Part shown: positions 3,118 to 39,628 of the stretch, in pieces | Layout of the letters: every line of letters begins with the position of its first letter | Position numbering within the stretch: the stretch's first letter is position 1 | IMG/VR virus record: IMGVR_UViG_3300025030_000041 | Span: 1 to 64,000 of that record | DNA: 64,000 bases | Reading direction: 5' to 3' (one strand) | Translations under genes and position numbers: made by a program | Notes under the pieces: generated by a model | Told to the model about the DNA's origin: nothing | Seen by the model: only the letters and a program-made list of their open reading frames with translations | The model's database searches: none

Positions 3118-3891
3118 CTATAGTAGTGCCTCATGAATCCATGATGAATTATTTAAATCATTTATATTACAATTACTATCAAATTTACCCAATAAAATTA
3201 ATTTTTCATTATTAGATAAATATAATTTGCTATTTTTACTCAAAATATAATATTGTGAATTAGATATAGATATTTTATACTTTGCATTTTTAATAAAAAT
3301 AGTTACTTCATTTAACATACTATCAGTTAAACTTAAATTTATTTCATCATTATTCAAATTCAAATATGGTAATAACCTCCATGTATCAGGCGCAACATTT
3401 AATGTATTAAATATAAAATCATATATCTTATCTAAATATAAATAGTTTTTAGAATTTAACATAGTACTTAATCTATATGGTATGCTTGAGTTTTCTCTAA
3501 TATATTTTATACACTCTATTGTTCTATTAAATTGGTCGTTATTACGTATACTAAATTCAGAATCATAATCGAATCCATCTAATGGCAAACCGATATAATC
3601 AATATTATTTTTTAATTTATCGAATTTCTCAATTAATTTATACCCATTAGTTATTAAATAATTATTAAAACCTAAACTCTTTGAAAATTCTAAAATCTCA
3701 TCCAAATCTTTTCTTAATGTTACTTCACCGCCCAAAAAACCAATTGTATCAAACCCTAATTCTTTAGCTATCTCAAGATTTTTTTTAACTATATTAATGT
3801 CATCACCATAATCTTTATATTCGCGATAACAAAACTTACATTTAGTATTGCACATACCAGTAAACCTGTAATATAAAATATTAGTATTCAT
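3118..3891 (-). CDS. Radical SAM enzyme (viperin/MoaA-like)
   Basis: CNTKCKFC (CxxxCxxC), GGE and ITNG motifs. Confidence 0.85.
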   Translation of the reverse strand: MNTNILYYRFTGMCNTKCKFCYREYKDYGDDINIVKKNLEIAKELGFDTIGFLGGEVTLRKDLDEILEFSKSLGFNNYLITNGYKLIEKFDKLKNNIDYIGLPLDGFDYDSEFSIRNNDQFNRTIECIKYIRENSSIPYRLSTMLNSKNYLYLDKIYDFIFNTLNVAPDTWRLLPYLNLNNDEINLSLTDSMLNEVTIFIKNAKYKISISNSQYYILSKNSKLYLSNNEKLILLGKFDSNCNINDLNNSSWIHEALL

Positions 3892-4133
3892 ATTTAAAAA
3901 ATTAACTACCTATTAATAAATAGTATGAAATAGTTGGTAGGAAACTAAATTATACCTTGAAACATCTTAAAAGGTATACTATTGAAATTAGTGCTCTTGG
4001 TTTATCTGACTAATACGCTTACAATTAAGTTCAACTGACCTATTGTTTTCAGTATACAAATTAGGTATTCCATTTTTTATTATAATAAAAAACTATAAAC
4101 TACCCTATTTGGTTAATACCTAGGTTTTAATAT

Positions 4134-4532
4134 TTATAAGTTTGGTATAGTATAAGCGCTACTAAATTTAGTTGTTAATTCGTGTATTAATGCATTGCCA
4201 GACCAAAAATATGGGTCTTCATCAATACTTACACTATACATTGCACCACCCTCTGGACAATAAAATGTTAAAGGCTTCCATTTATTTTTTGTAAATGCGT
4301 ACCATGTGTCATCTCTCTTTTCATATTTTATAATTTTAGTTGGATCAAACTGTAATTCATGAGTAACGATACTACCCTTAGCATGACACATATATTCATG
4401 CTCACATATTGCATCTATTACAATTCGTTTTTTATACAGAAAATTCTTAAATATGTAGTCGAGTATACGATCACTAAACAGCATTAATGTTAGTAGTATT
4501 AATACAATTGATAAAAATGTAAGTATACACAT
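4134..4532 (-). CDS. Hypothetical membrane-anchored protein
   Basis: ORF track; N-terminal hydrophobic helix. Confidence 0.6.
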   Translation of the reverse strand: MCILTFLSIVLILLTLMLFSDRILDYIFKNFLYKKRIVIDAICEHEYMCHAKGSIVTHELQFDPTKIIKYEKRDDTWYAFTKNKWKPLTFYCPEGGAMYSVSIDEDPYFWSGNALIHELTTKFSSAYTIPNL

Positions 4533-5080
4533 ATCTTTTATTTTTAATATTTTAAAATTATTTTTTTTAATATATTACTATTTTATTTCAATAGTATCTA
4601 TATGGTTAATGCATATTTAATCTATATATTCGTCATAACGAAATATAAATTTTCCATGGAGCCCTTTATATTCACGGGGCATTCTATATTTTTCTACTTC
4701 TTTATGGTCTATTTATTTTTTCTGAGTATAATAGCCTTTACCATTAATATAAAAGTCATAATTAGGATTAGGATTAGAAAATTTACTGCCATAAGCCATT
4801 AATAGTATTAGTATTAACATTATTGAAATACTGAATGCTATAATAAATATAATTTTTGCAGGTATACACATATTTTATATTTTTTAAGTTTTTAATAAAA
4901 ATACTAGGAGGTGTAAAATATAGTAATTGTAATAGACGTACTGTAGTTTGTTCCAGCAGTATGGTGAAACCCTCGTGTTATACTTACGTTAGTAGAATCT
5001 AGCCAATTATTTATTGTATGCTCTAAATCACTAATACTAGACTTTGTATAAAATATTTTTACTTTTTCCATAATTATTTA

Positions 5081-12624: not shown

Positions 12625-13026
12625 TTAAATGACGGGTATAGAAAAACCAAATGGAATAGTTTTAACATTGCCTTTTATTTTTAATTTAGCTGAGTCTGAC
12701 GATACTATCTTTTTTATCATGAGTGGATAAATAACCCCTTGTTTTAGACATGTACCTATTAAAGTCGTGGTATAATATGATAAAGGCGACCCACTAACAT
12801 TTCCTAAAAATGTTATAGTTATAGTATCAGAGTCTGTTAAAGTGTTTTTATCTATTAAAATTCCTGAAATAATTTCAGTTCCAGATAATCCACTTGACGG
12901 GTCATGACTATATTCTTTTATAGAATATCCATTTCCAAAATTTGATTGAGTAACTGGAGTTGGCCCATAATCAACATTTTCAACTATATCAATTATTTTA
13001 TAAAATGAATTTACAATATGATCCAT
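12625..13026 (-). CDS. Hypothetical (likely late/virion) protein
   Basis: ORF track; TAATAAATA upstream. Confidence 0.6.
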   Translation of the reverse strand: MDHIVNSFYKIIDIVENVDYGPTPVTQSNFGNGYSIKEYSHDPSSGLSGTEIISGILIDKNTLTDSDTITITFLGNVSGSPLSYYTTTLIGTCLKQGVIYPLMIKKIVSSDSAKLKIKGNVKTIPFGFSIPVI

Positions 13027-13209
13027 TATTTTTTAATTATTATTTTTTTGTTCTTATATTATTTATTAGAATTATCTGTTTAATTAAATTATTTTTTTTA
13101 ATCACTAAACGTATTTTCCGTTTTTCAAAATTTTAAAATGAATCTTTAAATATTTTTAACTAAATATATTAATAATCAATATTTTAAAGTTAATTGAATA
13201 TATATAATA

Positions 13210-13597
13210 GTTAGCAACAATAATTAGAACTGCGGTTCTGGAACAGTATAAGGTAATGTTTTAGAATAGCTTAGTTCCCATTCATCAGTTCCTTTTCCTA
13301 TTAATGTTGGGATGTGTCCAATCATATTAAATATCAACTGTTTTGGTTCAACAAAAACTACATCACTTCCAATGCAAGTGTGTTTTACTTCAACAATAGC
13401 GTCTTCACCCAACATGAGGTTTGTCTGGTTTTTGATTGACCAAAACTTAGTTCCTTTGGGAATTAATCTATTTTCTCCTATTTTAATTTCGTTCATAAAA
13501 TATTATTGTTGCTAACGAGGTATATATGCAATACCCTATTAAAGTTTATACTAAATTTTTATTTTTTGTGCAAGGGTACTGCATATATACCCAACCA
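13210..13597 (-). mobile_element. Integron-like gene cassette carrying ORF 13224-13496
   Basis: Perfect 15-bp inverted ends gttagcaacaataat (13210-13224) / attattgttgctaac (13502-13516), then hairpin ggtatatatgcaataccct...agggtactgcatatatacc. Confidence 0.75.
13224..13496 (-). CDS. Cassette-borne hypothetical protein
   Basis: ORF track; exactly fills the space between the inverted ends. Confidence 0.75.
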   Translation of the reverse strand: MNEIKIGENRLIPKGTKFWSIKNQTNLMLGEDAIVEVKHTCIGSDVVFVEPKQLIFNMIGHIPTLIGKGTDEWELSYSKTLPYTVPEPQF

Positions 13598-13616
13598 TTA
13601 GGTGCAATAAAAATTA

Positions 13617-13844
13617 CTACTTTTGTGCTATTGGATAGTCTGGTTCTCTGAATTTAAATCCTTTTGGTTTAATCAGAAAATCAGATTCGTCAGTTAGCAA
13701 GTGCCACTCACCATCATCAATTTTCATTTCAAATCCCATATCTCTCATACAGATATGTAATTGTTTCCCTTCTATTGTTTCAAGTGTAATTGAGGTATAC
13801 ACCTCTTTCAGAATAATCTGATTTTCTTTAGTTTCTACTTTCAT
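13617..13844 (-). CDS. Cassette-borne hypothetical protein
   Basis: ORF track; flanked by attaggtgcaataaaaattac / gtaatttttacagcttataac (15/21 complementary). Confidence 0.75.
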   Translation of the reverse strand: MKVETKENQIILKEVYTSITLETIEGKQLHICMRDMGFEMKIDDGEWHLLTDESDFLIKPKGFKFREPDYPIAQK

Positions 13845-13861
13845 ATTCCGTAATTTTTACA

Positions 13862-13963
13862 GCTTATAACAGCACCTAACAAAAATGGCTGCTACAAGCA
13901 TTGGTTTATAAATTGAAGTTTTATTTAAGCAGTCACTTCAGTTAGCTGCAAAAACATTATATG
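13862..13963 (-). mobile_element. attC-like hairpin
   Basis: gcttataac, arm gcacctaacaaaaatggctgct ... arm agcagtcacttcagttagctgc, aaaac-attatatg (GTT mutated to ATT). Confidence 0.75.
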
Positions 13964-14037
13964 TAATTTAAAAACTCACCATGTGCCAAATTTTACATTC
14001 TCTATCTAATTTAATTTGTTGCTCTTTAATTTTGCTT

Positions 14038-14232
14038 TTATAATATTTCATTGTTAAACTTAAAACTAAAAAGTCCTTCAAATGCATTTCTACCCGTTCC
14101 ATCGTTTGAAAATACAGTATAGTTAGTAAATTTTATATTACTCATATCTACATCAGAAAATTCTTTTTCTAATACAATTTTTAATTGCATAGGAGTAATT
14201 CTATTATCAAAATGTAATTTAGTTGATACCAT
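14038..14232 (-). CDS. Hypothetical early protein
   Basis: ORF track; first gene after the promoter at about 14277-14305. Confidence 0.55.
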   Translation of the reverse strand: MVSTKLHFDNRITPMQLKIVLEKEFSDVDMSNIKFTNYTVFSNDGTGRNAFEGLFSFKFNNEIL

Positions 14233-14276
14233 AGCATTATATTATATTATTAAATAGTTAAACAATAAAATTAAAT

Positions 14277-14305
14277 ACAATGTAAAATTAAGAAATAGTT
14301 TTGAC
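14277..14305 (-). promoter_or_regulatory. Early-type promoter driving the leftward cassette cluster
   Basis: Minus strand tcaaaactatttcttaattttacattgt shares aaaactatttctta with the 46591/49677 repeat. Confidence 0.55.
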
Positions 14306-14438
14306 ATTTAAAAATAAAATATTTAAATATTTTGTAACATATTGTCTTATAATACATTATTTTTATTAATTATATAAGAGTTTGGAGTTTTTCATATAAT
14401 TAAATTATGGAAATACTTATTAAAATGAGAATAAAAAT

Positions 14439-14465
14439 AAAACAATTTATCTTATTTTTTATAAG
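14439..14465 (+). promoter_or_regulatory. Putative middle promoter AAAACA-N15-TATAAG
   Basis: Same motif recurs upstream of several replication genes. Confidence 0.5.
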
Positions 14466-14494
14466 AGATTAGAAACTTAAAAACATTATTCATT

Positions 14495-15391
14495 ATGGCA
14501 AAAATAACAAATTTATCTGATTTAATTATAAAAAAGTTTGAGAATAGTACTGATGTTAAATTAGTAAACACGTTTGCTGATATTAGTGATTATATATCAA
14601 CGGGTAATTACTTATTAAATGCTCAACTTAGTGGAAGTTTATTAGGTGGAATACCTAATAATAGAATTACGACTTTAGCCGGTGATAGCGGGACAGGTAA
14701 AACATATTTAGCTCTTAATATTTGTAGGGAAGCCCAGAGAAATGGATATTTTATAGTATATGTAGATACTGAAGCTGCAGTATCAAAAGATATTATGATG
14801 GATTTTGGTATAGATACTGACACATCTAAATTATTATATGCTGGAATATCAAATATTGAAGACTTCGGATTACTTGGTAATAATATTATACAAATATCGA
14901 AAGACCAAAGAGCTAAGGGAGAGACTCCTAAGATATTAATTATATTAGATTCCCAAGGTATGCTAAATTCAAAAAAAGAAATAGATGATTTAAATAAAGG
15001 AAAGAATGCATCTGATATGGGAACTAGAGCTAAAGAATTAAGAAAATTATACAGAAATATAACTTATGAATTTAGTAATAACGGAATTACCTTTATTCCA
15101 TTAAACCACACTTACTGTTTAACGAGTGGGCATAATATTCAAATGGGAGATAATTCTTTAAAAGATATTAAAGATATACAAATTGGTGAATATGTAAAAA
15201 CGTTAGAAGGTAATAAAGAAGTAATAAATACATTTAATTTTGAAAATTTAGAGTTAATAGAATTAACTTTGTCAGATAATACAGTTGTTAAATGTACAAA
15301 AGACCATAAATTTTTAGTATCTAGTAATAATGAATTAATTTGGAAAAATGCAGATGAATTAAATGAAAATGATGAAATTTTAAGTATATAG
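14495..15391 (+). CDS. uvsX: UvsX/RecA recombinase N-fragment fused to a split-intein N part
   Basis: Walker A GDSGTGKT, YVDTE, ILDS, NHTY, then CLTSG... intein with block B CTKDH. Confidence 0.92.
   Translation: MAKITNLSDLIIKKFENSTDVKLVNTFADISDYISTGNYLLNAQLSGSLLGGIPNNRITTLAGDSGTGKTYLALNICREAQRNGYFIVYVDTEAAVSKDIMMDFGIDTDTSKLLYAGISNIEDFGLLGNNIIQISKDQRAKGETPKILIILDSQGMLNSKKEIDDLNKGKNASDMGTRAKELRKLYRNITYEFSNNGITFIPLNHTYCLTSGHNIQMGDNSLKDIKDIQIGEYVKTLEGNKEVINTFNFENLELIELTLSDNTVVKCTKDHKFLVSSNNELIWKNADELNENDEILSI
15116..15391 (+). mobile_element. Split intein N-fragment (91 aa)
   Basis: Starts at Cys208 (CLTSGHNI); TxxH block B; ends at the stop codon. Confidence 0.9.
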
Positions 15392-15417
15392 TAAATTATC
15401 TTAACTAATTAAAAAAA

Positions 15418-15543
15418 ATGAAAGACATGAATACAAAAAAAATTATTAAAAAACGTATAATTGAAAAACAAGAAAAAGTTTTTGATATTGAAGTAAAAGA
15501 TAGTCACCATTATTTTTTAGAAAACGGAGTGATTAGCCATAAT
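15418..15543 (+). mobile_element. Split intein C-fragment (42 aa)
   Basis: Basic N-terminus, block F VFDIEV, HN followed by Ser. Confidence 0.9.
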
Positions 15544-16524
15544 TCAGGTGGAATGTATGAAGCAACTAAGCAAGGCGGCGGGTGTTTAATACCAGGGACT
15601 AAGATATATACATTCAATAATGTATTAAAATCAATAGAAGGTGTTGAGTCTGGTGATTATGTTAAAACCTTATGTGGATATAAAGAAGTTTTAGAAACAT
15701 ATACATTTGAAAAATCTACTATAAAAATAGAATTTGAAGACACCACAAATATAATATGTTCAGAAGACCATCGTTTTTTAATTTCAGGAGACTATACAAT
15801 TGAAAGTAATTGGAAAAAAGCTAAAGACTTAGCTAATAATGAAAATATTTTAAAAATTGAAAATAATAATATTTTCAATTTAAAAATTAAAAATATTAAT
15901 CATTTATATACACAAAAAGTTCATGATATTAGTGTTAAAGATGTACATCATTATATATCTGAAACTGGTATAATAAATCATAATTCAGGAAATACCTATT
16001 CTGCATCAACTATTTTATTTTTATCTAAGTCATCTCTTAAAGAGGACGGCCAAACTAAAACGGGAATTGTAGTAAGATCTAAAACACAAAAAAATCGATT
16101 AGCTAAACCAATTGATATAGAATTCCATATTAGTCATATTAGCGGAATGAATCCGTATGTTGGATTACAAGATTATATTAGTTGGGAAAATTGTGGAGTA
16201 GTTAGAGGTACTCTACTTACTAAAAAAGAATTTGAAAAAGATAAGTCAAATAACCAAAAAACATATCATGAATTCGAACACAATAATGAAAAGTATTATG
16301 TAATTCCGTCTGATAAAGCTAGAAATATAGTTATAAGAGACGGATGTAAAGAAGTTCCATTTAAAAAACTATTTACATCAGAAGTATTTACAGAAAATGT
16401 TATTAAAGAATTAGATGAAAAAGTAATACGACCTAAATTTAAATATGATAAAATTAAAGACTTATTATCTAATGAATTAACTGAAGTTTTTGGTGATACT
16501 ACAGACGATGAATCAGACGAATAA
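15418..16524 (+). CDS. uvsX: UvsX C-fragment: intein C part, 13-aa extein, second mini-intein, C-extein
   Basis: VFDIEV...ISHN/S, then SGGMYEATKQGGG, CLIPG...INHN/S, then SGNTYSASTILFL...KNRLAKP. Confidence 0.92.
   Translation: MKDMNTKKIIKKRIIEKQEKVFDIEVKDSHHYFLENGVISHNSGGMYEATKQGGGCLIPGTKIYTFNNVLKSIEGVESGDYVKTLCGYKEVLETYTFEKSTIKIEFEDTTNIICSEDHRFLISGDYTIESNWKKAKDLANNENILKIENNNIFNLKIKNINHLYTQKVHDISVKDVHHYISETGIINHNSGNTYSASTILFLSKSSLKEDGQTKTGIVVRSKTQKNRLAKPIDIEFHISHISGMNPYVGLQDYISWENCGVVRGTLLTKKEFEKDKSNNQKTYHEFEHNNEKYYVIPSDKARNIVIRDGCKEVPFKKLFTSEVFTENVIKELDEKVIRPKFKYDKIKDLLSNELTEVFGDTTDDESDE
15583..15984 (+). mobile_element. Contiguous mini-intein (134 aa)
   Basis: C1 CLIPGTKI, block B CSEDH, block F VHDISV, terminal HN followed by Ser; no endonuclease domain. 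Confidence 0.9.
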
Positions 16525-16576
16525 GCAATTAATTTTATAAAAAACCTTAATGAATACTAAAAAATATTAAAATTAA

Positions 16577-17032
16577 ATGAAAAGAAAAATATTATTAATT
16601 TGTTTATCACTATTTTTAGTTGGAAAAACTTTTTCACGTAATACATTTAAAGATACTACAAACGTATTAAATAATTTAGAAACAATACTTTTTCATGTAA
16701 CTTTTTCTAAATTAAATTCAGAATTTAAAAATGAATTAAAATTTAGAGAAGATTTAGTTGTTGGTAATCTAAGTATAGCCGAATTATATTTTTCTAATAA
16801 AAAATCAAAATACTCTAAAATATCATTTTTATTTAAAAACGATATTTTCATAGGATATACTATATATTTTAGAAAAACAAAAAGCCTAAAATATTATAGA
16901 AAGATATATGGCCCTTGTATAGAAATTAGGAAAAATGATAATCAAATAATATGGGCAAGCTCTAGTGGTAAAATACGAGCTATAGTTTCATTAGAAAAAC
17001 GTAAAGAATTAACAATTTTATTTAAAAAATAG
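16577..17032 (+). CDS. Hypothetical exported protein
   Basis: Signal-peptide-like MKRKILLICLSLFLVG. Confidence 0.6.
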   Translation: MKRKILLICLSLFLVGKTFSRNTFKDTTNVLNNLETILFHVTFSKLNSEFKNELKFREDLVVGNLSIAELYFSNKKSKYSKISFLFKNDIFIGYTIYFRKTKSLKYYRKIYGPCIEIRKNDNQIIWASSSGKIRAIVSLEKRKELTILFKK

Positions 17033-17034
17033 AT

Positions 17035-17331
17035 ATGAGTTTAAGAAAAAGTGTTCCAATAAAATATCATTTAAATTTACATAAATACCTTCCAAATTAT
17101 CCTACTAAAAATGATTTAATATTTGATTTAATAGACAAATTATCTAAAAACGATAAGCTTAAGTTTTCAATATCAACTATAAACCAAATTTATAAAGAAA
17201 AATTAGAAGATGAGTCGTTTAAAACAAAAATAAAAAAATACATAAATGAATTAATTGAAGACAAAAAAATAATTCAAGACGGGAATTTTTTTATTTTAAC
17301 TGAGCCCCTTATAAATTCATTCATAGAGTAA
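17035..17331 (+). CDS. Hypothetical protein (possible winged helix)
   Basis: ORF track; operon context. Confidence 0.6.
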   Translation: MSLRKSVPIKYHLNLHKYLPNYPTKNDLIFDLIDKLSKNDKLKFSISTINQIYKEKLEDESFKTKIKKYINELIEDKKIIQDGNFFILTEPLINSFIE

Positions 17332-17332
17332 A

Positions 17333-17518
17333 ATGAAAAAACTAATAATATTTTTATTTTCGCTTATCCTACTAATGGTAGTAGGAGAAATTCGTTGTAT
17401 TTATAAAGCTATAAATTGCAATTGGGAACCTATTGGCAAAGCTGAAATAATATATACAATGTCGTCATTTACTGGATTAGGAAGTATTGTTGGATGGACG
17501 AATATTAAAGATAATTAA
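17333..17518 (+). CDS. Small membrane protein
   Basis: Two hydrophobic segments. Confidence 0.6.
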   Translation: MKKLIIFLFSLILLMVVGEIRCIYKAINCNWEPIGKAEIIYTMSSFTGLGSIVGWTNIKDN

Positions 17519-17527
17519 AAAATATTT

Positions 17528-18235
17528 ATGTTAGAGTTTAGTCAAAATATAAATTACCTCGAAAAAGTATTCTTCTTTTATATATGTCAAAGTAAAGACT
17601 TAATTAGTATATGTAATCCTACTTTTTTTGATAATGAGAAAATAGGAATTACTTTTAAAATAGTTAAATCATTTACTGAAAAATATGAGAAGCCCCCATC
17701 TTCAAATCAAGTTAAACAAATTATAAAATTAAAGGGGTTTGAAATAACTGACCAAGATATTGATTTATTATATAGTGTAAATTTAGATGAATATGACCCG
17801 TCATGGTTAGAAGAATATACTAATACATTTTTATTACTTCGTAATTTAAATGTAAATATGATAGATCTTCTTACATATTTAAAAACTACTACAATAACTC
17901 CAAGTAATATTCAAGAAGTAGTTGATTATGTAAGGAATTTCGTAAGCAAAAAAATTAATTCTAATGTAGTTATTGGTAAAGAAGATGGACTAGACTTTTC
18001 TAAAGTAGAAGACCATTACCAACTTACAAAAACTAATAAATTTTCTACTGGATATACTTACTTCGACAAAGTCCTCGGAGGAGGTTGGGAGAAGAAAACT
18101 TTTAACGTTACAATGGCGCGTCCAAAATTAGGTAAGTGTTTTTTAGGAAATACTATGATTAAAATAAGAAATAAAAAAACTAATATAATTCAAGAAATAT
18201 CAATAGAAGATTTTTATAAATTAATAAAAAAATAA
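17528..18235 (+). CDS. 41: Replicative helicase (gp41/DnaB) N-fragment plus a 32-aa intein N part
   Basis: STGYTYFDKVLGGG, Walker A ARPKLGK broken by CFLGNTMIKIRN. Confidence 0.9.
   Translation: MLEFSQNINYLEKVFFFYICQSKDLISICNPTFFDNEKIGITFKIVKSFTEKYEKPPSSNQVKQIIKLKGFEITDQDIDLLYSVNLDEYDPSWLEEYTNTFLLLRNLNVNMIDLLTYLKTTTITPSNIQEVVDYVRNFVSKKINSNVVIGKEDGLDFSKVEDHYQLTKTNKFSTGYTYFDKVLGGGWEKKTFNVTMARPKLGKCFLGNTMIKIRNKKTNIIQEISIEDFYKLIKK
18137..18235 (+). mobile_element. Atypically short split-intein N-fragment (32 aa)
   Basis: Block A CFLGNTMIKI directly after the P-loop GK, then a stop codon. Confidence 0.85.
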
Positions 18236-18273
18236 ATTAAATCGTTTTCCAAGTTTTCCTCTTCCAATTTTTA

Positions 18274-18281
18274 TATAAATA
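18274..18281 (+). promoter_or_regulatory. Late promoter TATAAATA of the endonuclease gene
   Basis: Exact T4 late consensus about 20 nt upstream of ATG 18301. Confidence 0.65.
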
Positions 18282-18300
18282 ATAAAAAATAAAAAAAGTT

Positions 18301-19470
18301 ATGAAACTTATAAAGATTGTAGACGATGTGCCAAGAATTAGTAAATTTGGTGTATATGACGAATATGAGTGTCAGTTGTGTGGAAAAAAATGTAAAAAGA
18401 AAAATAGTTTATCTAAGCATTTGTCTACTATTCATGGTTTAAACAATAATGATAAACGTAAAGACTATTATGATAAATACTTAAAAGTTGATGGAGAGGG
18501 AATATGTGTAATATCAGGCAAACCTACTAAATTTATTAATTTTAGTGGTTATAACAAATATATAAATACTCCAGAGGTTAATAAAATAAAATTAAATACT
18601 AAAGGGATAACTTATTTAATGAAAGTTAAAAAACTTTCATACGACGACGCATTAATAGAAAGACAAAATATTGTAAAAAGAAATTCCGAAGGGGTTAAAA
18701 AAGCATTTAGTGAAAAAATAAAGAAAGATCCACTTTGCTGGAATAAGTCTAGCATATATTGTAAAGAATACTGGATTAATAAAGGATATTCTAAAGAAGA
18801 CTCTATTCAATTAGCCAATGATAAGATAACTAAAAATAGAGAAAAACTACAAAAAATTTTAAAAGACGATCCGTCTTATATGAAAAATAAATTAAATACA
18901 TCTTTAGACTATTGGTTAAAAAAGACAAATGGAAATGAAGAAGAAGCTAAAAAATTATTATCTGAACGCCAAACTACTTTTAATTTAGAAAAATGTATAG
19001 AAAAATATGGCGAAGACGACGGAAGAAAAAGATGGGTAGAAAGACAAGAAAAATGGTGTAAAAACTATAAAAAAAGTAATTATTCTAAAATTAGTCAAGA
19101 ATTATTTTGGAGTATTTATGATAAATTAGAGGTTTCTTATAAAAATAATAAATCTATATATTTCGCGGAATTATTAAATAATCGTAAAGACGAAAGCGAA
19201 AAAAATAATGAATACCGATTAAAATTAAAAAATAGGGTTATTATTCCAGATTTTTTCATTTTAGAAAATAAAAAAATAATAGAATTTGATGGAGTGTATT
19301 GGCATAATGAACATAAAATAAAGTATCCAAATCAAAACCGAGATAATGAAAAGTCTAACGACTTAATTAATGAGGGTTATTCTATTTTAAGGATTGTTGA
19401 GGACTTGTATTATAAAAATAAAGAAGAAATAGTTAAACAATGTTTAGAATTTATATATAAGGATTTATGA
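18301..19470 (+). CDS. Free-standing homing endonuclease (C2H2 Zn finger plus Vsr/DUF559-like nuclease)
   Basis: CQLC...HLSTIH; C-terminal PDFFILENKKIIEFDGVYWH; lies between the intein halves. Confidence 0.82.
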   Translation: MKLIKIVDDVPRISKFGVYDEYECQLCGKKCKKKNSLSKHLSTIHGLNNNDKRKDYYDKYLKVDGEGICVISGKPTKFINFSGYNKYINTPEVNKIKLNTKGITYLMKVKKLSYDDALIERQNIVKRNSEGVKKAFSEKIKKDPLCWNKSSIYCKEYWINKGYSKEDSIQLANDKITKNREKLQKILKDDPSYMKNKLNTSLDYWLKKTNGNEEEAKKLLSERQTTFNLEKCIEKYGEDDGRKRWVERQEKWCKNYKKSNYSKISQELFWSIYDKLEVSYKNNKSIYFAELLNNRKDESEKNNEYRLKLKNRVIIPDFFILENKKIIEFDGVYWHNEHKIKYPNQNRDNEKSNDLINEGYSILRIVEDLYYKNKEEIVKQCLEFIYKDL

Positions 19471-19829
19471 GTAAAAATAATAGTGCTATACGTAAATTTA
19501 TAGATTCAATTAATATTGATGAGTACGATGTATTAACTGATACTGGGTGGGAAGATATTAAATCTATTAATAAGACTATAAAATATAGAGCATTTAGAGT
19601 AGAAACTAAATCTTTTTATTTAGAAGGGGCCGACGATCATATTATTTTTGATAAAGATTATAATGAAATATATTTAAAAGAATTAAGTATTGGCGATAGT
19701 GTATTAACTGAAAATGGAATTGAAATAGTTTTAAATATAAAAGATTTAGAATATTCAGATAATATGTATGACTTAGAAATTAATTCTGAAAATCACAGGT
19801 ATTATACGAATGGTATTTTAAGTCATAAT
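19467..19829 (+). mobile_element. Split intein C-fragment (121 aa)
   Basis: Contains blocks B, F and G; ends in HN before Ser, which completes the GK-S P-loop. Confidence 0.88.
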
Positions 19830-20690
19830 AGTACAATTCTTTCAAATTTTGCTGCAAATTCAATACGTAATGGAAAAAATGCAGCCGTTATTACACTAGA
19901 GTTATCTGATAGGAAATATATGAGGCGAGTGGGGGCTAATCTTTTAAATATTACAACTGGCGAATATAAAGATTTTGATGAAACTAGAAAAGATTTAATT
20001 AAACATAAACTTGATAATTTTTATGGAATGTTAGGGTGGCCTGCTGGTAATTTATGGATTAAAGAATTTCCGACTGGAACTGCGTCATTTATTGATATTG
20101 AAAATTCTTTGCTTAGGCGTGAAGATAAAACTGGAATTAAATATGACTTAGTAATAGTTGACTATCTTAATTTGATGAAAAGCGATGGCAATTCTAATCA
20201 AAATATGTATGAAAGAATAAAACGAATATCAGAAGGATTAAGAGCAATAAGCCAAAGAAATGAATGGTGTGTAGTATCAGCAACACAAGTTAGAAAAGAG
20301 TATTTTGATAAAGACGTTTTAGGGATGGATGCTGCAGCAGAAAGTAGTGGATTAATTGCAACAGTCGACTCTTTATTTGCTGCCTCTAGGGATTCTCTTA
20401 GTGATATTGCAAGAATAGAATTAATAGCAAACAGAGATGAAGGATATACCGGTAGTTCTTGTAATTTTAAGATGCAATTTAAAAATGCAAAGATGATTGA
20501 GACAAATGAGTTTCAGTATTATGGCGATGAAGACGGCACTAACTTAGAAAAAGAGATGCTAGAATCTTATAAGAAAAATGAAATTATAAGTGCTATTGCA
20601 GGACAATCAATAGGAACTAATATTGAAATACCTGAAGTTAATAAAAATAATAAAGAAACAGATTACGAATCAATTTTAAATTCTATTTAG
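19467..20690 (+). CDS. 41: Helicase C-fragment preceded by a 121-aa intein C part
   Basis: ADDH block B, MYDL block F, LSHN/S; then ITLELS, VIVDYLNL, SATQ, AAESSG. Confidence 0.9.
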   Translation: MSKNNSAIRKFIDSINIDEYDVLTDTGWEDIKSINKTIKYRAFRVETKSFYLEGADDHIIFDKDYNEIYLKELSIGDSVLTENGIEIVLNIKDLEYSDNMYDLEINSENHRYYTNGILSHNSTILSNFAANSIRNGKNAAVITLELSDRKYMRRVGANLLNITTGEYKDFDETRKDLIKHKLDNFYGMLGWPAGNLWIKEFPTGTASFIDIENSLLRREDKTGIKYDLVIVDYLNLMKSDGNSNQNMYERIKRISEGLRAISQRNEWCVVSATQVRKEYFDKDVLGMDAAAESSGLIATVDSLFAASRDSLSDIARIELIANRDEGYTGSSCNFKMQFKNAKMIETNEFQYYGDEDGTNLEKEMLESYKKNEIISAIAGQSIGTNIEIPEVNKNNKETDYESILNSI

Positions 20691-20691
20691 T

Positions 20692-21186
20692 ATGTGTTTT
20701 TGTTTAGAATATGAACGGCTTATAAATGATAAATATGACTATTGTATAGATCATGCGTTTGATGATTGTGTATGTGGAAACCTAAAACAACGAAACAAAA
20801 ATGTGTGCAGTGAATGCGACTATAATATTACTAAAAAAGAAATTGGTTTTTCTATATGCCCTTTATGTAATGATGAATTCATTTTTAGTAAATTTTTAAA
20901 TACTGCAATTAAAAATGAAAAAACTAGATTAATTGCAAATTTAATAACTCATTATAGACATGTACATCAATCTTCTTGGAATACCTCATGTCATTTTATA
21001 TCAAATAGTTGGGGTCAATTAGCATACGCAAAAGCTAAAGATGAGCATAACAATCGAGCAAAAAGACAAATACTCAGAAAATGTTTTAATTGGGTAAATA
21101 ACAATGGTATTAAAAAAGAAAATTTTCTTGAATTACAAAATAATGATGAAAAAACTATTGAATTAATTAATAAAATATATAAATGA
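20692..21186 (+). CDS. Cys/His-rich zinc-binding hypothetical protein
   Basis: Several CxxC pairs and THYRHVH. Confidence 0.65.
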   Translation: MCFCLEYERLINDKYDYCIDHAFDDCVCGNLKQRNKNVCSECDYNITKKEIGFSICPLCNDEFIFSKFLNTAIKNEKTRLIANLITHYRHVHQSSWNTSCHFISNSWGQLAYAKAKDEHNNRAKRQILRKCFNWVNNNGIKKENFLELQNNDEKTIELINKIYK

Positions 21187-21443
21187 TGAAATACTATAAT
21201 CAAAAATTAGAGCGAGGCCTTATAAAAATAGGGTGCAAAAGAGTCTGGTTTAGTGATAAATCTGGGTATTGGTTAGAGAAAAATTTTAAATTTAAAGATT
21301 TAAATTTAAGGTTATATATTGAACCTGACCAGAAAAAGTTCTATTTTAGTATAAAGCTAGAAACTCCAGAGCAATACGAAACTATTAAAACTTATAAATT
21401 GACTTTATCTAATGTTAAAAAACTTTTGAAAAAGTATTCATAG
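21183..21443 (+). CDS. Hypothetical protein
   Basis: ORF track. Confidence 0.6.
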   Translation: MMKYYNQKLERGLIKIGCKRVWFSDKSGYWLEKNFKFKDLNLRLYIEPDQKKFYFSIKLETPEQYETIKTYKLTLSNVKKLLKKYS

Positions 21444-21498
21444 AGCTAAATCTTTTTAAAGATAAAATAAATAAATAAAGGATTACGTATTTTATCTT

Positions 21499-24400
21499 AT
21501 GGATATATCAAAACTTTTTTTCTTTAATAAAAACGGTGAAAATATAAATTTCACGTTTAATTCGTCTTTAAATAAGTATGAGAGTACTATTTATTTTGAT
21601 AAATTATCAAGTTCTCTATTTGATAATGAAAATCTTTATATTCTAGAAAAGTCCGGTGACTCATATATTTATCCTACTTTTACTGCTACCCAATCCTTAA
21701 AATTTAAATGGAAAACTCTATCTGATAAAGAGAATATCTTTTTATATGATATTGAAACAAGTAATGAAGATAATAACGACTATATTATAACAAAAGACGA
21801 AGTTTTAATATCATATGACCCATCGTTATATGGTGATAAAATTCCATTAAATATTAATATAGCATTTAACCCCTTGGATGAAACTAATTATGAAAGAGTA
21901 TTAGAAATATACTTGCTTGATATAGCTTCACCTGGAACATCCGATTTAATTGGAGAAATAAGTTTTTATGGTGAAGGAATAGACGAAGACGAAAGATATA
22001 GAATATGGTTAGCTAATTTTGGTATTAAATTTAATAGAGAGGATGCTTTAATATTAAAGGATTATGATATAAAAGAGGCTTTACCAAATTGGGAAATTAT
22101 TAATAACAAGCGGAAAGAAGCATTATTAACTAGGCCAGAGGTATACCCATATGTTGGAACATATAAAGGATTGACTAATATTATTAATTTTTTAGGGTTC
22201 AGAGATTTTTTATCAGTAAAAGAGTATTGGCAAAATAAAAACACAGATTCGCCATACTTTAATAAATTTACATTAATTGATATAAGTGATTTATTAGATG
22301 ATGGAAAAATAAATTCTATTGATTTAACTACATATAATAATAACGTTAAATTTACTCCTGAATTTAAAAAAACCGGATTATTAGGATTATATTATAAAAT
22401 AACAGATACAACGGGTGTAGAAGATGCTGACGGAATACCAGAGGTAGTACGAACTACTGAATTCAGCAATGACGAGATTTTATATAAACTTAATAGATTA
22501 AAAGATAAATTAAAAGATGAAATACTTCCAATTAATGTTAAAATTATAGATATAGTTGGTGAGTTTTTATTTTTTCAAAAATTTTCAATTAGAACTTGGA
22601 ATAATAGAGTTGAAATAAAAGATTTTCAAATTAACGAAAATTATGATATATCAGTTTATCCTTTAAATGATACTGAAGCATATTTATATGATCTTAAACC
22701 TCTATTAATAAAAATAAATCAATCTTCTACTAATGTAAATTTCGGAAATTATATATTTAATAATAGCCAGTCAAATCCATATGACTGGTCTCAAAAATAC
22801 CCGCCAACTGATATTCCTTTATTAATTGAATCAATAAAGACTTTTTATAATGAAATACAACAGTCTAAAAAAGATGGATTAAATGAACCATTACCGTGGA
22901 ACTTCGGAGATGAACCTGAAAATATAATTGGATGTCCAGTTATATTTAAAGTTAAGTTTGACGAAATTACATGGGATATATTATCAAATTCAACATGGGA
23001 TAGTCTAGACGATTTTTATACATGGGATACTATAAACTTTAAATCAATTTATGAAATAGAATGGAATATAAGTAAAAAAATCGGAACACCTTACTCTTTT
23101 ACTTATCGAGGATATATAAAAGATTTACATACATTACCTCATTTTTTACCATATGAAGGAGAATATGACGTCTTTGCTAAACTATATGATCTTAACTCTG
23201 GTCATAGCATAAATTATGAAAATAAAATTATAAATGTTAAAAAAATAGAACCTGAAATAATCGCATTATCTAGAATTGAAGATAAATTTGGCGATACTTG
23301 GGATGACTTATCTAATGTAACATGGGATGAAATAGAATCATCATACTGGTATAATCCTATTGTAAACATAGTTAATCAAAATAATAACGAGATAGATTTA
23401 CAAAGAAATTTATACGAGTGGGATTTTTATAAAGATAAAATAAAAGATGCTAAAATATTTAATGACGACACTTTTATATATGAATCCTTAAATACTAGCC
23501 TGCATTCTCTTAAAAATTTATATGGTATACCTAAAAAAGGAGGAAGTGATGTATACGAATGGACATGGGATGATTTTGAAAATGCAACATGGGATGACTT
23601 ATTTCATATGAAATGGTATCATATGGTATATCACTCTGATTTTTTAGCAGGTTTTCTTATTAAGAAACTTCCAAGAAAAGGAGATATTATACAAATGAAT
23701 AAATATTCAGATTTTGTATTTCAAACTACTATGCTAACTTTACAAGATGCAATCGATGAATTGAATTTATCTAGCCATAATGGAATATCGTTATTTAAAT
23801 ATGAGGTTCAAAGTTATCATAAAAAATATAAAGTAACATTAACAAAAAGTACAACTGATTTTACATATGACTTAACGATTAATGAATCTAATATTATATA
23901 TATTGCAACTCCTTTACAAGATATAAATGAAATTAGAGACGCATTGATTAATCTAATTAATAATGAAATTACCCAACATGTTACGGCAATTAGTGCTTCA
24001 AATGATAGTTTTTTAATAATCGGTGATGTGGAAGAAGATGACTATATATTATCAGTAACTAGCCCAAGTTTAATAGATTTTGAATTAATACAAGATCCTG
24101 GTCCATTTATTAGTGCGACTGCAAAAGACTTTGGAAAAGAAAGTTATGTAATTATAAATTATATTTCATCTGGCGATGACGACGACTCTAGTCCATTCTC
24201 ACCAAGAACCTCTAATTTCTTAGAAGGCAACAAATACTCGTATAACGAACCTATTTGGATTTATAATAAATCTCAAATTGAATCTTTAAATAATAAATAT
24301 ATAAGTCTAGATATTGAAAATTTATTTGTTGATGCACCATTTAGCGATATTGCTAATGGAAATACTAATAATATTCAGTATTGGATAGATAATAAATATA

Positions 24401-38191: not shown

Positions 38192-39628
38192 TTATTTATC
38201 TAATTCATTTAGCCTATCAGACAATGCCTTACGCAAAGCTTTATTTTCGAGTCTTTCATTATAAAAATAATTTAATATTTTTCGTGAGACTGAATCAATA
38301 TCCATCCTAAAATATGTATCAAATGCCGTTTTACATATTTTTCTATCTATTAGCTCCTCAATAGATAAATTAAGGCCTTTCCCTAAATATGTATCAGGTG
38401 ATATATTATTGCTACAAATTATGTTCGGATATAGACTAGAAAAGTCCTGACATACTACAGTTTTATAATATCCAGGAATCGGTTCCTTAACGAATGCGCC
38501 TTCATATTTTGGGCCACCTTCATTTTTTTGATACTTTGAGTTATATATTAGTTGTTTTTCTTCTTCTGTTTTTTCAGGTACTTTTAAATTTTGTTCTATG
38601 TATTTTCTAAATATTAGAATTTCACTTATAAATACTGGGCTATTATATTTATTAATATCACATATACTTAAGTTTACCATTTCAAATACAACATCAAGAA
38701 GAAATTTAGAGTCTTCTATTTCTTTTACTAAAATAGAGTCGATAGCATTGTATATTGCAAATTTGCGATAATTTGTTTTATACATTTCTAGTATATTTTC
38801 ATTATCATTTTTAAATTTTTTAACTCCAAGTACTTCTTTTGAAATATAGTCTAATGTATAATTCTCTACAATTTTTAATGGCGACCTGCTTCTAAATAGT
38901 TCAAGGTAGTCTATAACAGCAGTATGAGCTGGAACTAAATATTTTGTTACTCTTTTATTTGTTGCTATATTTTTTGTTGGATTTATTTTTAAATTTTCAC
39001 AGCGTTTCATTAGATATTGCCAGTCAAAATTTAAGAAATTCCATCCAGTTAATAGCGGTATTTTTGGTAGAAATTTATGAAAGAAATACTCTAACATTTC
39101 TATTTCAGTTTTGAACCAAAGATATTTTAAAGTATAGGTTTTTAAATTTGGATTACTTTTTTTAAGATATGTATTCATTTCATTTTCCATATCTTGTTCT
39201 TGACTTCTCAAGTCTTCTCGACACGACAATATATATGCAATATTAGATTCGTTTACTACTGATATTAGAAGAACTTGGTATTTTGCTTCTGATGGTTCTG
39301 GGAATTCATTATTTTCTCCAGTTTCAGTCTCAATATCACAATAATATTTTTTAGGAGTATTAAATTCTGACATTTTATTTTTTTCATCTAGTGTGAGATT
39401 ATTATATAAGAATTCTTCTTGTCTAAAACGTCCTAAATACTCTGTAGGTTTTTTTCTTACATTTTTATTATCCCAACTTTTTAATCCAGTATTTTCTTCA
39501 CAATATTCGTAGTTATATAAATCAGAACTTGGTATATTTTTAATAATAAAGTCTATTTCTTTATTTTTATTAATGTATGATATATACATTTTACTTTTAT
39601 ACTTATTAAATTCAACTCCTACTACCAT
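38192..39628 (-). CDS. 43: Family B DNA polymerase, N-terminal half (exonuclease plus motif A; gp43A-like)
   Basis: DIET (ExoI), GWNFLNFD (ExoII), YNAID (ExoIII), DFSSLYP (motif A); ends before motif B. Confidence 0.9.
   Translation of the reverse strand: MVVGVEFNKYKSKMYISYINKNKEIDFIIKNIPSSDLYNYEYCEENTGLKSWDNKNVRKKPTEYLGRFRQEEFLYNNLTLDEKNKMSEFNTPKKYYCDIETETGENNEFPEPSEAKYQVLLISVVNESNIAYILSCREDLRSQEQDMENEMNTYLKKSNPNLKTYTLKYLWFKTEIEMLEYFFHKFLPKIPLLTGWNFLNFDWQYLMKRCENLKINPTKNIATNKRVTKYLVPAHTAVIDYLELFRSRSPLKIVENYTLDYISKEVLGVKKFKNDNENILEMYKTNYRKFAIYNAIDSILVKEIEDSKFLLDVVFEMVNLSICDINKYNSPVFISEILIFRKYIEQNLKVPEKTEEEKQLIYNSKYQKNEGGPKYEGAFVKEPIPGYYKTVVCQDFSSLYPNIICSNNISPDTYLGKGLNLSIEELIDRKICKTAFDTYFRMDIDSVSRKILNYFYNERLENKALRKALSDRLNELDK

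Follow-up and report, generated by a model that had tools for sequence, protein, structure and literature searches.

How can a functional recombinase be produced from a gene that is cut in two and, thirteen codons downstream of the cut, interrupted a second time? This question is raised by the uvsX locus of the window analysed here, a stretch of 64,000 nt corresponding to positions 1 to 64,000 of the IMG/VR record IMGVR_UViG_3300025030_000041 (246 kb). The window has a GC content of 25% and encodes a T4-type portal, a gp46-like SMC ATPase, a family-B polymerase and a DnaB-type helicase; this T4-type gene set indicates that the source is a T4-like phage. The uvsX region is also present in groundwater metagenome assemblies of PRJNA268031. 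Two consecutive open reading frames (ORF1 and ORF2) carry UvsX sequences (extein) together with two inteins (Table 1). We designate as Int1 the split intein at site a (after NHTY), which consists of an N-terminal half (IntN) and a C-terminal half (IntC), and as Int2 the contiguous mini-intein at site b (after GGG). Loci labelled L002, L062 and so on are relatives, and a slash in a motif marks a splice junction. Probably, the locus is a functional T4-like uvsX gene that carries two selfish class-1 mini-inteins flanking loop L2 of the recombinase, split at site a and contiguous at site b, and whose product is restored by a combination of cis- and trans-splicing.

Table 1. Features of the two uvsX genes (nucleotide positions in the window; lengths in amino acids, aa; profile positions refer to the 133-position profile of the intein family)
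Feature	Position	Strand	Description
ORF1	14495-15391	+	298 aa: UvsX N-extein (207 aa), then IntN (91 aa)
UvsX N-extein	14495-15115	+	207 aa, C-terminal NHTY; Pfam RecA (E-value = 5.9e-14); Walker A GDSGTGKT
IntN of Int1 (site a)	15116-15388	+	91 aa; Cys1, block B TKDH, net charge -9; profile positions 1-90 (E-value = 6.8e-33)
Break between genes	15389-15417	+	TAG of ORF1, then 26-nt gap opening with an in-frame TAA
ORF2	15418-16524	+	368 aa; frame differs from ORF1
IntC of Int1 (site a)	15418-15543	+	42 aa; block F VFDIEV, C-terminal SHN, Ser+1; profile positions 96-133 (E-value = 4e-14)
Middle extein SGGMYEATKQGGG	15544-15582	+	13 aa, RecA/UvsX L2 loop; mapped to E. coli RecA via an intein-less relative
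Int2 (site b), contiguous	15583-15984	+	134 aa; Cys1, block B SEDH, block F VHDISV, C-terminal NHN, Ser+1
UvsX C-extein	15985-16524	+	179 aa plus stop, N-terminal SGNTYSAS; matches UvsX 9gbg residues 219-282

The N-extein exhibits a high scoring match to residues 24-203 of a phage UvsX structure (9gbg; E-value = 1.3e-28), and the C-extein matches the same structure from residue 219 (E-value = 1.5e-6). The C-extein is also 45-55% identical to the C-terminal parts of intein-less relatives. When both inteins are removed conceptually, a UvsX of 399 aa results (207 + 13 + 179), colinear with an intein-less relative of 395 aa. In IMG/VR we identified 57 relatives without intein, about 395 aa long, in which 14 codons separate the two extein blocks. 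The intein-less protein of L005 (395 aa) was aligned to E. coli RecA. In this alignment its NH corresponds to N193-Q194 and its GG to G211-G212, which puts site a near R196/M197 and site b near N213/A214 of RecA. We take loop L2 to span RecA residues 195-209, so that site a falls within L2, some two residues from its start, and site b is located a few residues beyond its end. The motifs flanking L2 (NQ or NH on one side, GG-x-x-(K/x)-(F/Y)-(Y/S)-A-S on the other; mapped onto RecA 193-220) are restored only when both inteins are taken out, in the order NHTY, the 13-aa segment and SGNTYSAS.

A preliminary description of this locus had proposed that splicing reconstitutes the L2 region. This is borne out by the 14 codons found in intein-less relatives and by the bracketing of L2 by the two sites on RecA. 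The reading frames and element boundaries that it had given were confirmed to the residue, and its proposal that UvsX needs one trans- and one cis-splicing event agrees with the anatomy of the two genes, from which both events would be expected. Its statement that no endonuclease is left at the uvsX locus also holds: the gap between the genes is 26 nt long, and Int2 lacks an endonuclease domain.

Both ORFs are recognized by Pfam as intein-containing, with RecA and Intein_splicing domains in ORF1 and an Intein_splicing domain in ORF2, where Int2 scores 42.4 bits against a curated cut-off of 35.8. We compared the two inteins with an alignment of 28 contiguous relatives, the invariant columns of which are Cys1, the block-B His, the block-F Asp, the terminal Asn and three structural positions. 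Int2 holds all seven of them. Cys1 is present in both inteins (CLTSG... in Int1, CLIPG... in Int2), and block B conforms to (T/S)xxH in both, its His being invariant. At the C-termini (VFDIEV...SHN/S in Int1, VHDISV...NHN/S in Int2), the alignment has an invariant D115 and N134, and the conservation of H133 reaches at least 90%. In the profile made from these 28 inteins, IntN and IntC occupy complementary parts, with the break at positions 91-95. The two halves thus correspond to one complete mini-intein, cut at the loop where endonucleases are usually inserted. The halves are also complementary in charge, the acidic IntN being paired with an IntC whose first 22 aa have a net charge of +5. Across the family, the charges of split members are more strongly polarized than those of contiguous ones (IntN -8.9 versus -5.9, p = 0.011; IntC +0.45 versus -1.7, p = 0.008; no correction for kinship).

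The AlphaFold model of Int2 exhibits a predicted local distance difference test score (pLDDT) of 97.8. With this model as query, Foldseek returned first the gp41-1 intein (6QAZ; template modelling (TM) scores 0.83/0.87, root mean square deviation 2.0), then the NpuDnaB and Mtu RecA inteins at TM scores of about 0.8. The gp41-1 intein is the best sequence match in the PDB as well (E-value = 1e-7). According to the model Int2 has a HINT fold; for the split Int1, profile coverage alone suggests the same fold. Autocatalytic splicing and trans-splicing by these inteins are predicted. Scanning all six frames of the window with profile hidden Markov models of the N- and C-parts revealed no further copy of the family, the intein of the helicase excepted.

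The break between ORF1 and ORF2 might be an artefact of sequencing or assembly, the true gene having a contiguous first intein. The origin of the sequence, a metagenome assembly of a genome with 25% GC, and a homopolymer-like A run at the end of the gap are compatible with such an error. However, the TAG of ORF1 is followed by a second in-frame stop, and the gap contains stops in the other two frames as well, so that no single frameshift or read-through of the TAG joins ORF1 and ORF2. The gap ends in an A-rich leader before the ATG of ORF2. IMG, ENA and Logan assembly records all carry the identical sequence. Across the 2030-nt region that contains the gap, an ENA assembly and the Logan assembly of SRR1658462 (groundwater, PRJNA268031) exhibit 100% identity to the window, and a 1660-nt contig of the ENA assembly ERZ27254728 is identical to the first 1465 nt of this region, in which the gap is again included. 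Orthologous splits are found in unrelated samples, and the same site-a split occurs in diverged phages, the exteins of which are about 45-50% identical. The split is thus unlikely to be an artefact, and a contiguous first intein in the true gene is extremely improbable. Read-through, frameshift and recoding, considered as ways to express a single protein, were ruled out, given the TAG followed at once by TAA and the closure of each frame of the gap.

A genuine break could also be a disabling mutation in a decaying pseudogene, from which functional UvsX is not made. The absence of an endonuclease to maintain the element and the shortness of the intergenic gap fit such a decay, but most features of the locus do not. 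The invariant intein residues are all kept in both halves, the break is located exactly at the canonical split position, and the charges of the split halves are complementary. The exteins, 45-55% identical to those of relatives, exhibit no other defects. The start context of ORF2 (ATG preceded by an A-rich leader) resembles that of other genes of this genome. Furthermore, phages with no more than about 45% identity also have the two-gene form with a short gap: in L003 the site-a halves are separated by a short gap only, and in L073 the called genes are 22 nt apart. Other relatives retain an endonuclease gene at this place. L002 has IntN, a gene for a 350-aa DUF7487 endonuclease and IntC in succession, and in L064-L067 a DUF7487 endonuclease gene is likewise located between the site-a halves. 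A pseudogene is therefore, in our judgement, quite unlikely.

How widespread is this arrangement? Int2 was searched with HMMER against 1.84 billion representative proteins. The search produced 230 matches, and about 110 of the best 150 were in a UvsX context. The UvsX sites used by this intein family are the P-loop, site a (NHTY/C), a position about four residues after site a, and site b (GG/C). Every combination of cis and trans is found among the relatives, and in many phages site a alone or site b alone is occupied. Counted in clusters at 50% identity, UvsX is split at site a only in 8, split at site b only in 16, and contiguous at site b in 9. The combination seen in the window, split at a and contiguous at b, is represented by 7 clusters (window included), and the converse, contiguous at a (or at the site just after it) and split at b, by 2. 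Free-standing endonucleases, seen as DUF7487 proteins or as endonuclease-sized gaps, separate the halves in L002, L062-L067 and L075-L079. Among the loci arranged like the window, L064-L067 and L076-L078 have a gap of endonuclease size at site a, and L073 is without endonuclease.

In 14 clusters, an IntC, a segment of 8-15 aa and an IntN are encoded on one small protein, which means that uvsX is distributed over three genes. The gene order in L062 and L063 is N-extein with IntN, DUF7487 endonuclease, the small protein P0004 (146 aa), and IntC with C-extein. The three-gene order is also found with endonuclease-sized gaps at both breaks in the IMG/VR loci L075 (68.6-kb contig) and L079, and with short gaps in L093 (60-kb contig), where the C-extein was not detected. 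To judge from the gene structure, the placement of the 13-aa L2 loop on an IntC-loop-IntN protein of about 146 aa looks like a natural case of three-fragment trans-splicing. The arrangement of the window is uncommon, yet not a one-off: it belongs to a series that is widespread among environmental phages.

Two observations were made on relatives with other structures. In L074, positions 3501-4688 encode a protein (P0018) that combines IntC, the loop, a contiguous intein and the C-extein, directly after thyX and ribonucleotide reductase genes. The N-half of uvsX was not found upstream of P0018, and the uvsX halves appear to be dispersed in this genome. Among the non-UvsX matches of the Int2 search, P0105, P0015, P0147, P0077 and P0143 contain several tandem HINT domains with 0-10 residues between them; in P0105, the +1 Cys of one HINT unit appears to double as Cys1 of the next.

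The relatedness of Int1 and Int2, already pointed out in the preliminary description, is far beyond chance. IntN exhibits 42% identity to Int2 (E-value = 1e-20), and IntC exhibits 60% identity to the C-terminal end of Int2 over 25 aa (E-value = 5e-9). That description attributed the resemblance to local duplication rather than independent homing, Int2 being derived from Int1. It suggested in addition that IntN may also pair with the C-part of Int2, which would lead to a UvsX lacking the 13-aa L2 loop. The homology of the two inteins is in agreement with a duplication. Nevertheless, for both of them closer relatives exist in other phages at the corresponding site: Int1 best matches a site-a intein of another phage (53% identity), and Int2 a site-b intein (52%). 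On the DNA level Int1 and Int2 are only 62-71% identical, and the identity between the C-parts of a and b inteins is not above that between genomes (0.40) when the two come from the same genome (0.43; n = 7, ungapped), a comparison that gives no signal in either direction.

An intein phylogeny, which the preliminary description had suggested as a check, was constructed by maximum likelihood from the N-parts of 93 UvsX inteins (92 columns). Site labels are clustered on this tree, with 10 changes for site b against 24.9 in shuffles, none of 500 shuffles being as low. Int2 is placed among site-b inteins, and the inteins around Int1 are mainly of site a. The two are not sisters, and neither belongs to a well-supported clade. 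When Int1 and Int2 were forced to be sisters, the log likelihood fell by 13.8 units and the approximately unbiased (AU) test did not reject the sisterhood (p = 0.345), so that the pair may go back to an ancient duplication in the family or to an ancient change of site. Matches to same-site relatives closer than the match between the two neighbours, together with the clustering by site, disfavour a recent local duplication, which appears unlikely in this genome. We favour the view that Int1 and Int2 are old paralogues of one family, each belonging to a site-specific lineage distributed among phages. A site switch in ancient times, undated, is likely to have occurred somewhere in the family.

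For the proposed cross-pairing, a precedent exists only among engineered inteins, in which domain swapping has been shown to cause intein-mediated protein alternative splicing (iPAS; Aranko 2013, cited in PMC8175363). Related naturally split DnaE inteins have been observed to cross-react (bioRxiv 10.1101/546465). In the window, however, Int2 is contiguous, so that its C-part is held in cis and should fold with its own N-part, which disfavours the skipping of the loop, and the sequence contains nothing that speaks for it. The skipped product would lack L2, the loop that binds single-stranded DNA (ssDNA). The relatives in which both inteins are split would, moreover, need orthogonal pairs. Taken as a whole, local duplication with cross-pairing of IntN and Int2 is very unlikely.

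With two genuine, old inteins, the restoration of UvsX could proceed as follows. The site-a intein would be a fractured gene, the free-standing homing endonuclease gene of which is gone and has left the 26-nt spacer. ORF1 and ORF2 are probably co-transcribed and separately translated. In the ORF2 product, Int2 would fold and remove itself by cis-splicing. Before or after this event, the acidic IntN at the end of the ORF1 product would associate with the basic IntC at the start of the ORF2 product, and the two would trans-splice. The end product would be a 399-aa UvsX with intact L2. The two selfish elements would persist at two insertion hot spots flanking L2 because imprecise loss at these positions would destroy an essential loop. 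As to transcription, no terminator-like site was found in 14200-16800, and promoter-like sites are not in excess there (20 versus 24.5 in shuffles); the co-transcription of ORF1 and ORF2 is therefore only presumed. A scan with Rfam found no RNA family and no group I or group II intron in 13000-21500, and the opposite strand of the uvsX region contains only short ORFs.

Several points weigh against this reading of the locus. The splicing of this phage's UvsX is predicted solely from the sequence and the structural model. The Intein_splicing match in ORF1 (33.6 bits) is under the Pfam cut-off, as expected, since it is a half-domain. The matching assembly records may rest on shared reads. The comparison of charge between split and contiguous family members ignores the phylogenetic non-independence of the sequences. 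Finally, the tree is based on 92 columns, most of its deep branches are without support, and the AU test allows Int1 and Int2 to be sisters.

The same anatomy might instead serve regulation. The intein pair would then be a conditional switch, UvsX becoming active only once both splicing reactions are permitted by redox state (through the two Cys1 residues), by ssDNA or by the stoichiometry of the halves. The splicing of the Pho RadA intein is stimulated by ssDNA (PMC5238726), and the control of recombinase intein splicing by temperature has been discussed (PMC4760082). The inteins of the window bracket the ssDNA-binding loop, and the arrangement persists in several lineages. This persistence is, however, equally explained by selfish elements at sites where imprecise loss is lethal (PMC2988022), and most close relatives have no intein. 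We assign the conditional switch a low but appreciable probability. A somewhat lower one is given to the idea that the L2 loop is a separately handled module, for which the order of splicing, or an occasional cross-pairing of IntN with Int2, would produce L2-less or conditionally activated UvsX; the IntC-loop-IntN proteins of relatives would then perhaps be the first natural tandem trans-splicing of three fragments with orthogonal pairs. If true, this would be a natural case of alternative or conditional splicing at the protein level.

Other features of the window deserve mention. The gp41/DnaB-type helicase is also fractured (17528-18235, 18301-19470 and 19467-20690, all on the + strand). Its N-terminal piece breaks inside Walker A (ARPKLGK/C...) and carries an atypically short IntN of 32 aa. 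Between the helicase halves is a free-standing endonuclease of 389 aa, with a C2H2 zinc finger and a DUF559/Vsr-like domain. The helicase IntC, of about 122 aa with a C-terminal SHN/S, is joined to the DnaB_C domain. As to the family-B DNA polymerase, its ORF (38192-39628, - strand) contains the exonuclease domain and only the start of the polymerase domain, and ends without an intein. The ORFs downstream of it are Metallophos proteins, which suggests that this polymerase is divided between two genes; its second half was not located. A Shine-Dalgarno-like motif is found upstream of 5 of the 65 ORFs of the window, and leaders are A-rich. For the UvsX C-extein, the best phage matches in the database are Prevotella Lak megaphages, with 37% identity only.

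In the open-access literature, we found no description of UvsX split inteins at these sites, of double inteins around L2, or of natural three-piece genes. A canonical split at the L2 flanks of UvsX, two members of one intein family 13 residues apart, and the three-gene variants thus appear not to have been described there. A maturation involving both cis- and trans-splicing is known from the DnaE of Trichodesmium erythraeum, for which Liu and Yang reportedly found, in 2003, contiguous inteins together with a split intein in one protein. The host in that system is a cellular polymerase, and its inteins are far apart, not a pair from one family around a single loop. Thiel et al., in 2014, reportedly found naturally split inteins with an atypical break in metagenomes of Lake Vida and Ace Lake, UvsX being among the hosts. 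The VidaL intein (6VGV) is, like Int1, a naturally split intein from environmental phage-like sequences. Its IntN is however very short, in contrast to the canonical division into 91 + 42 aa seen here, and its structural match is distant (rank 47). A short IntN (32 aa) is, however, present in the neighbouring helicase gene of the window.

The closest parallel is provided by the fractured genes with split inteins, including gp41-1, that Dassa et al. 2009 (PMC2677866) described in metagenomic sequences of T4-like phages. As in those loci, the host gene of the window is a T4-like replication/recombination gene divided into two ORFs that share a class-1 mini-intein between them, one half each, with the break in the loop where endonucleases are inserted, and relatives of the window keep a free-standing endonuclease of the PD-(D/E)xK type (DUF7487) between the halves. 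The gp41-7 locus in the same study lacks an endonuclease, and the window matches this state. The differences are that UvsX, here the host, is only a neighbouring gene in PMC2677866, and that the window has a second, contiguous intein 13 residues downstream, with no endonuclease. Compared with gp41-1, the acidic IntN and basic IntC of the window are opposite to the reported polarity, and the identity is only about 28%. The inteins of RecA and RadA (Mtu RecA 2IMZ/3IFJ; Pho RadA 4E2T; PMC4760082) are similar in having hosts of the RecA superfamily, conserved functional sites as insertion points and a HINT fold. Each of them is, however, the lone and contiguous intein of a cellular gene, and some contain a LAGLIDADG endonuclease domain.

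Split inteins of phage fractured genes (gp41-1, NrdJ-1) are among the fastest tools for protein ligation, and the ligation of multiple fragments needs pairs that do not cross-react. The IntC-extein-IntN protein of the relatives has the very design used in engineered tandem trans-splicing for one-pot three-piece ligation with orthogonal pairs. Those systems, like iPAS, are laboratory constructs and not natural genes, and only one of the two inteins of the window is split. The uvsX locus and those related to it may be a source of pairs of related inteins that have to function next to each other in a single protein, at a distance of 8-15 residues, and the candidacy of the uvsX intein as a split-intein tool, suggested in the preliminary description, appears reasonable from its predicted properties. 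The uvsX series may also inform on intein evolution, since contiguous inteins, fractured ones with and without endonuclease, and dispersed halves are all found within one host gene, where two to four insertion points are grouped about a single functional loop.

Split uvsX genes are present in cultured phages, too. In the Straboviridae they are found in Proteus phage vB_PmiM_Pm5461 (L068; NC_028762, 19207-21534), Escherichia phage HY03, Salmonella phage pSe_SNUABM_01 and others (about 30 cultured T4-like phages besides L068). Their records are annotated as "DNA repair protein / homing endonuclease / recombinase", and none has an intein annotation. The intein is of the same family as those of the window; it is split, is located at site b (TGG/C ... 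THN/TGVMYSAD) and has an endonuclease gene between its halves. In contrast to the window, site b alone is occupied, and the endonuclease is of the NUMOD3 type. Owing to this site-b split intein in cultured Straboviridae of E. coli, Salmonella and Proteus, the trans-splicing of UvsX is accessible to a direct test in laboratory phages.

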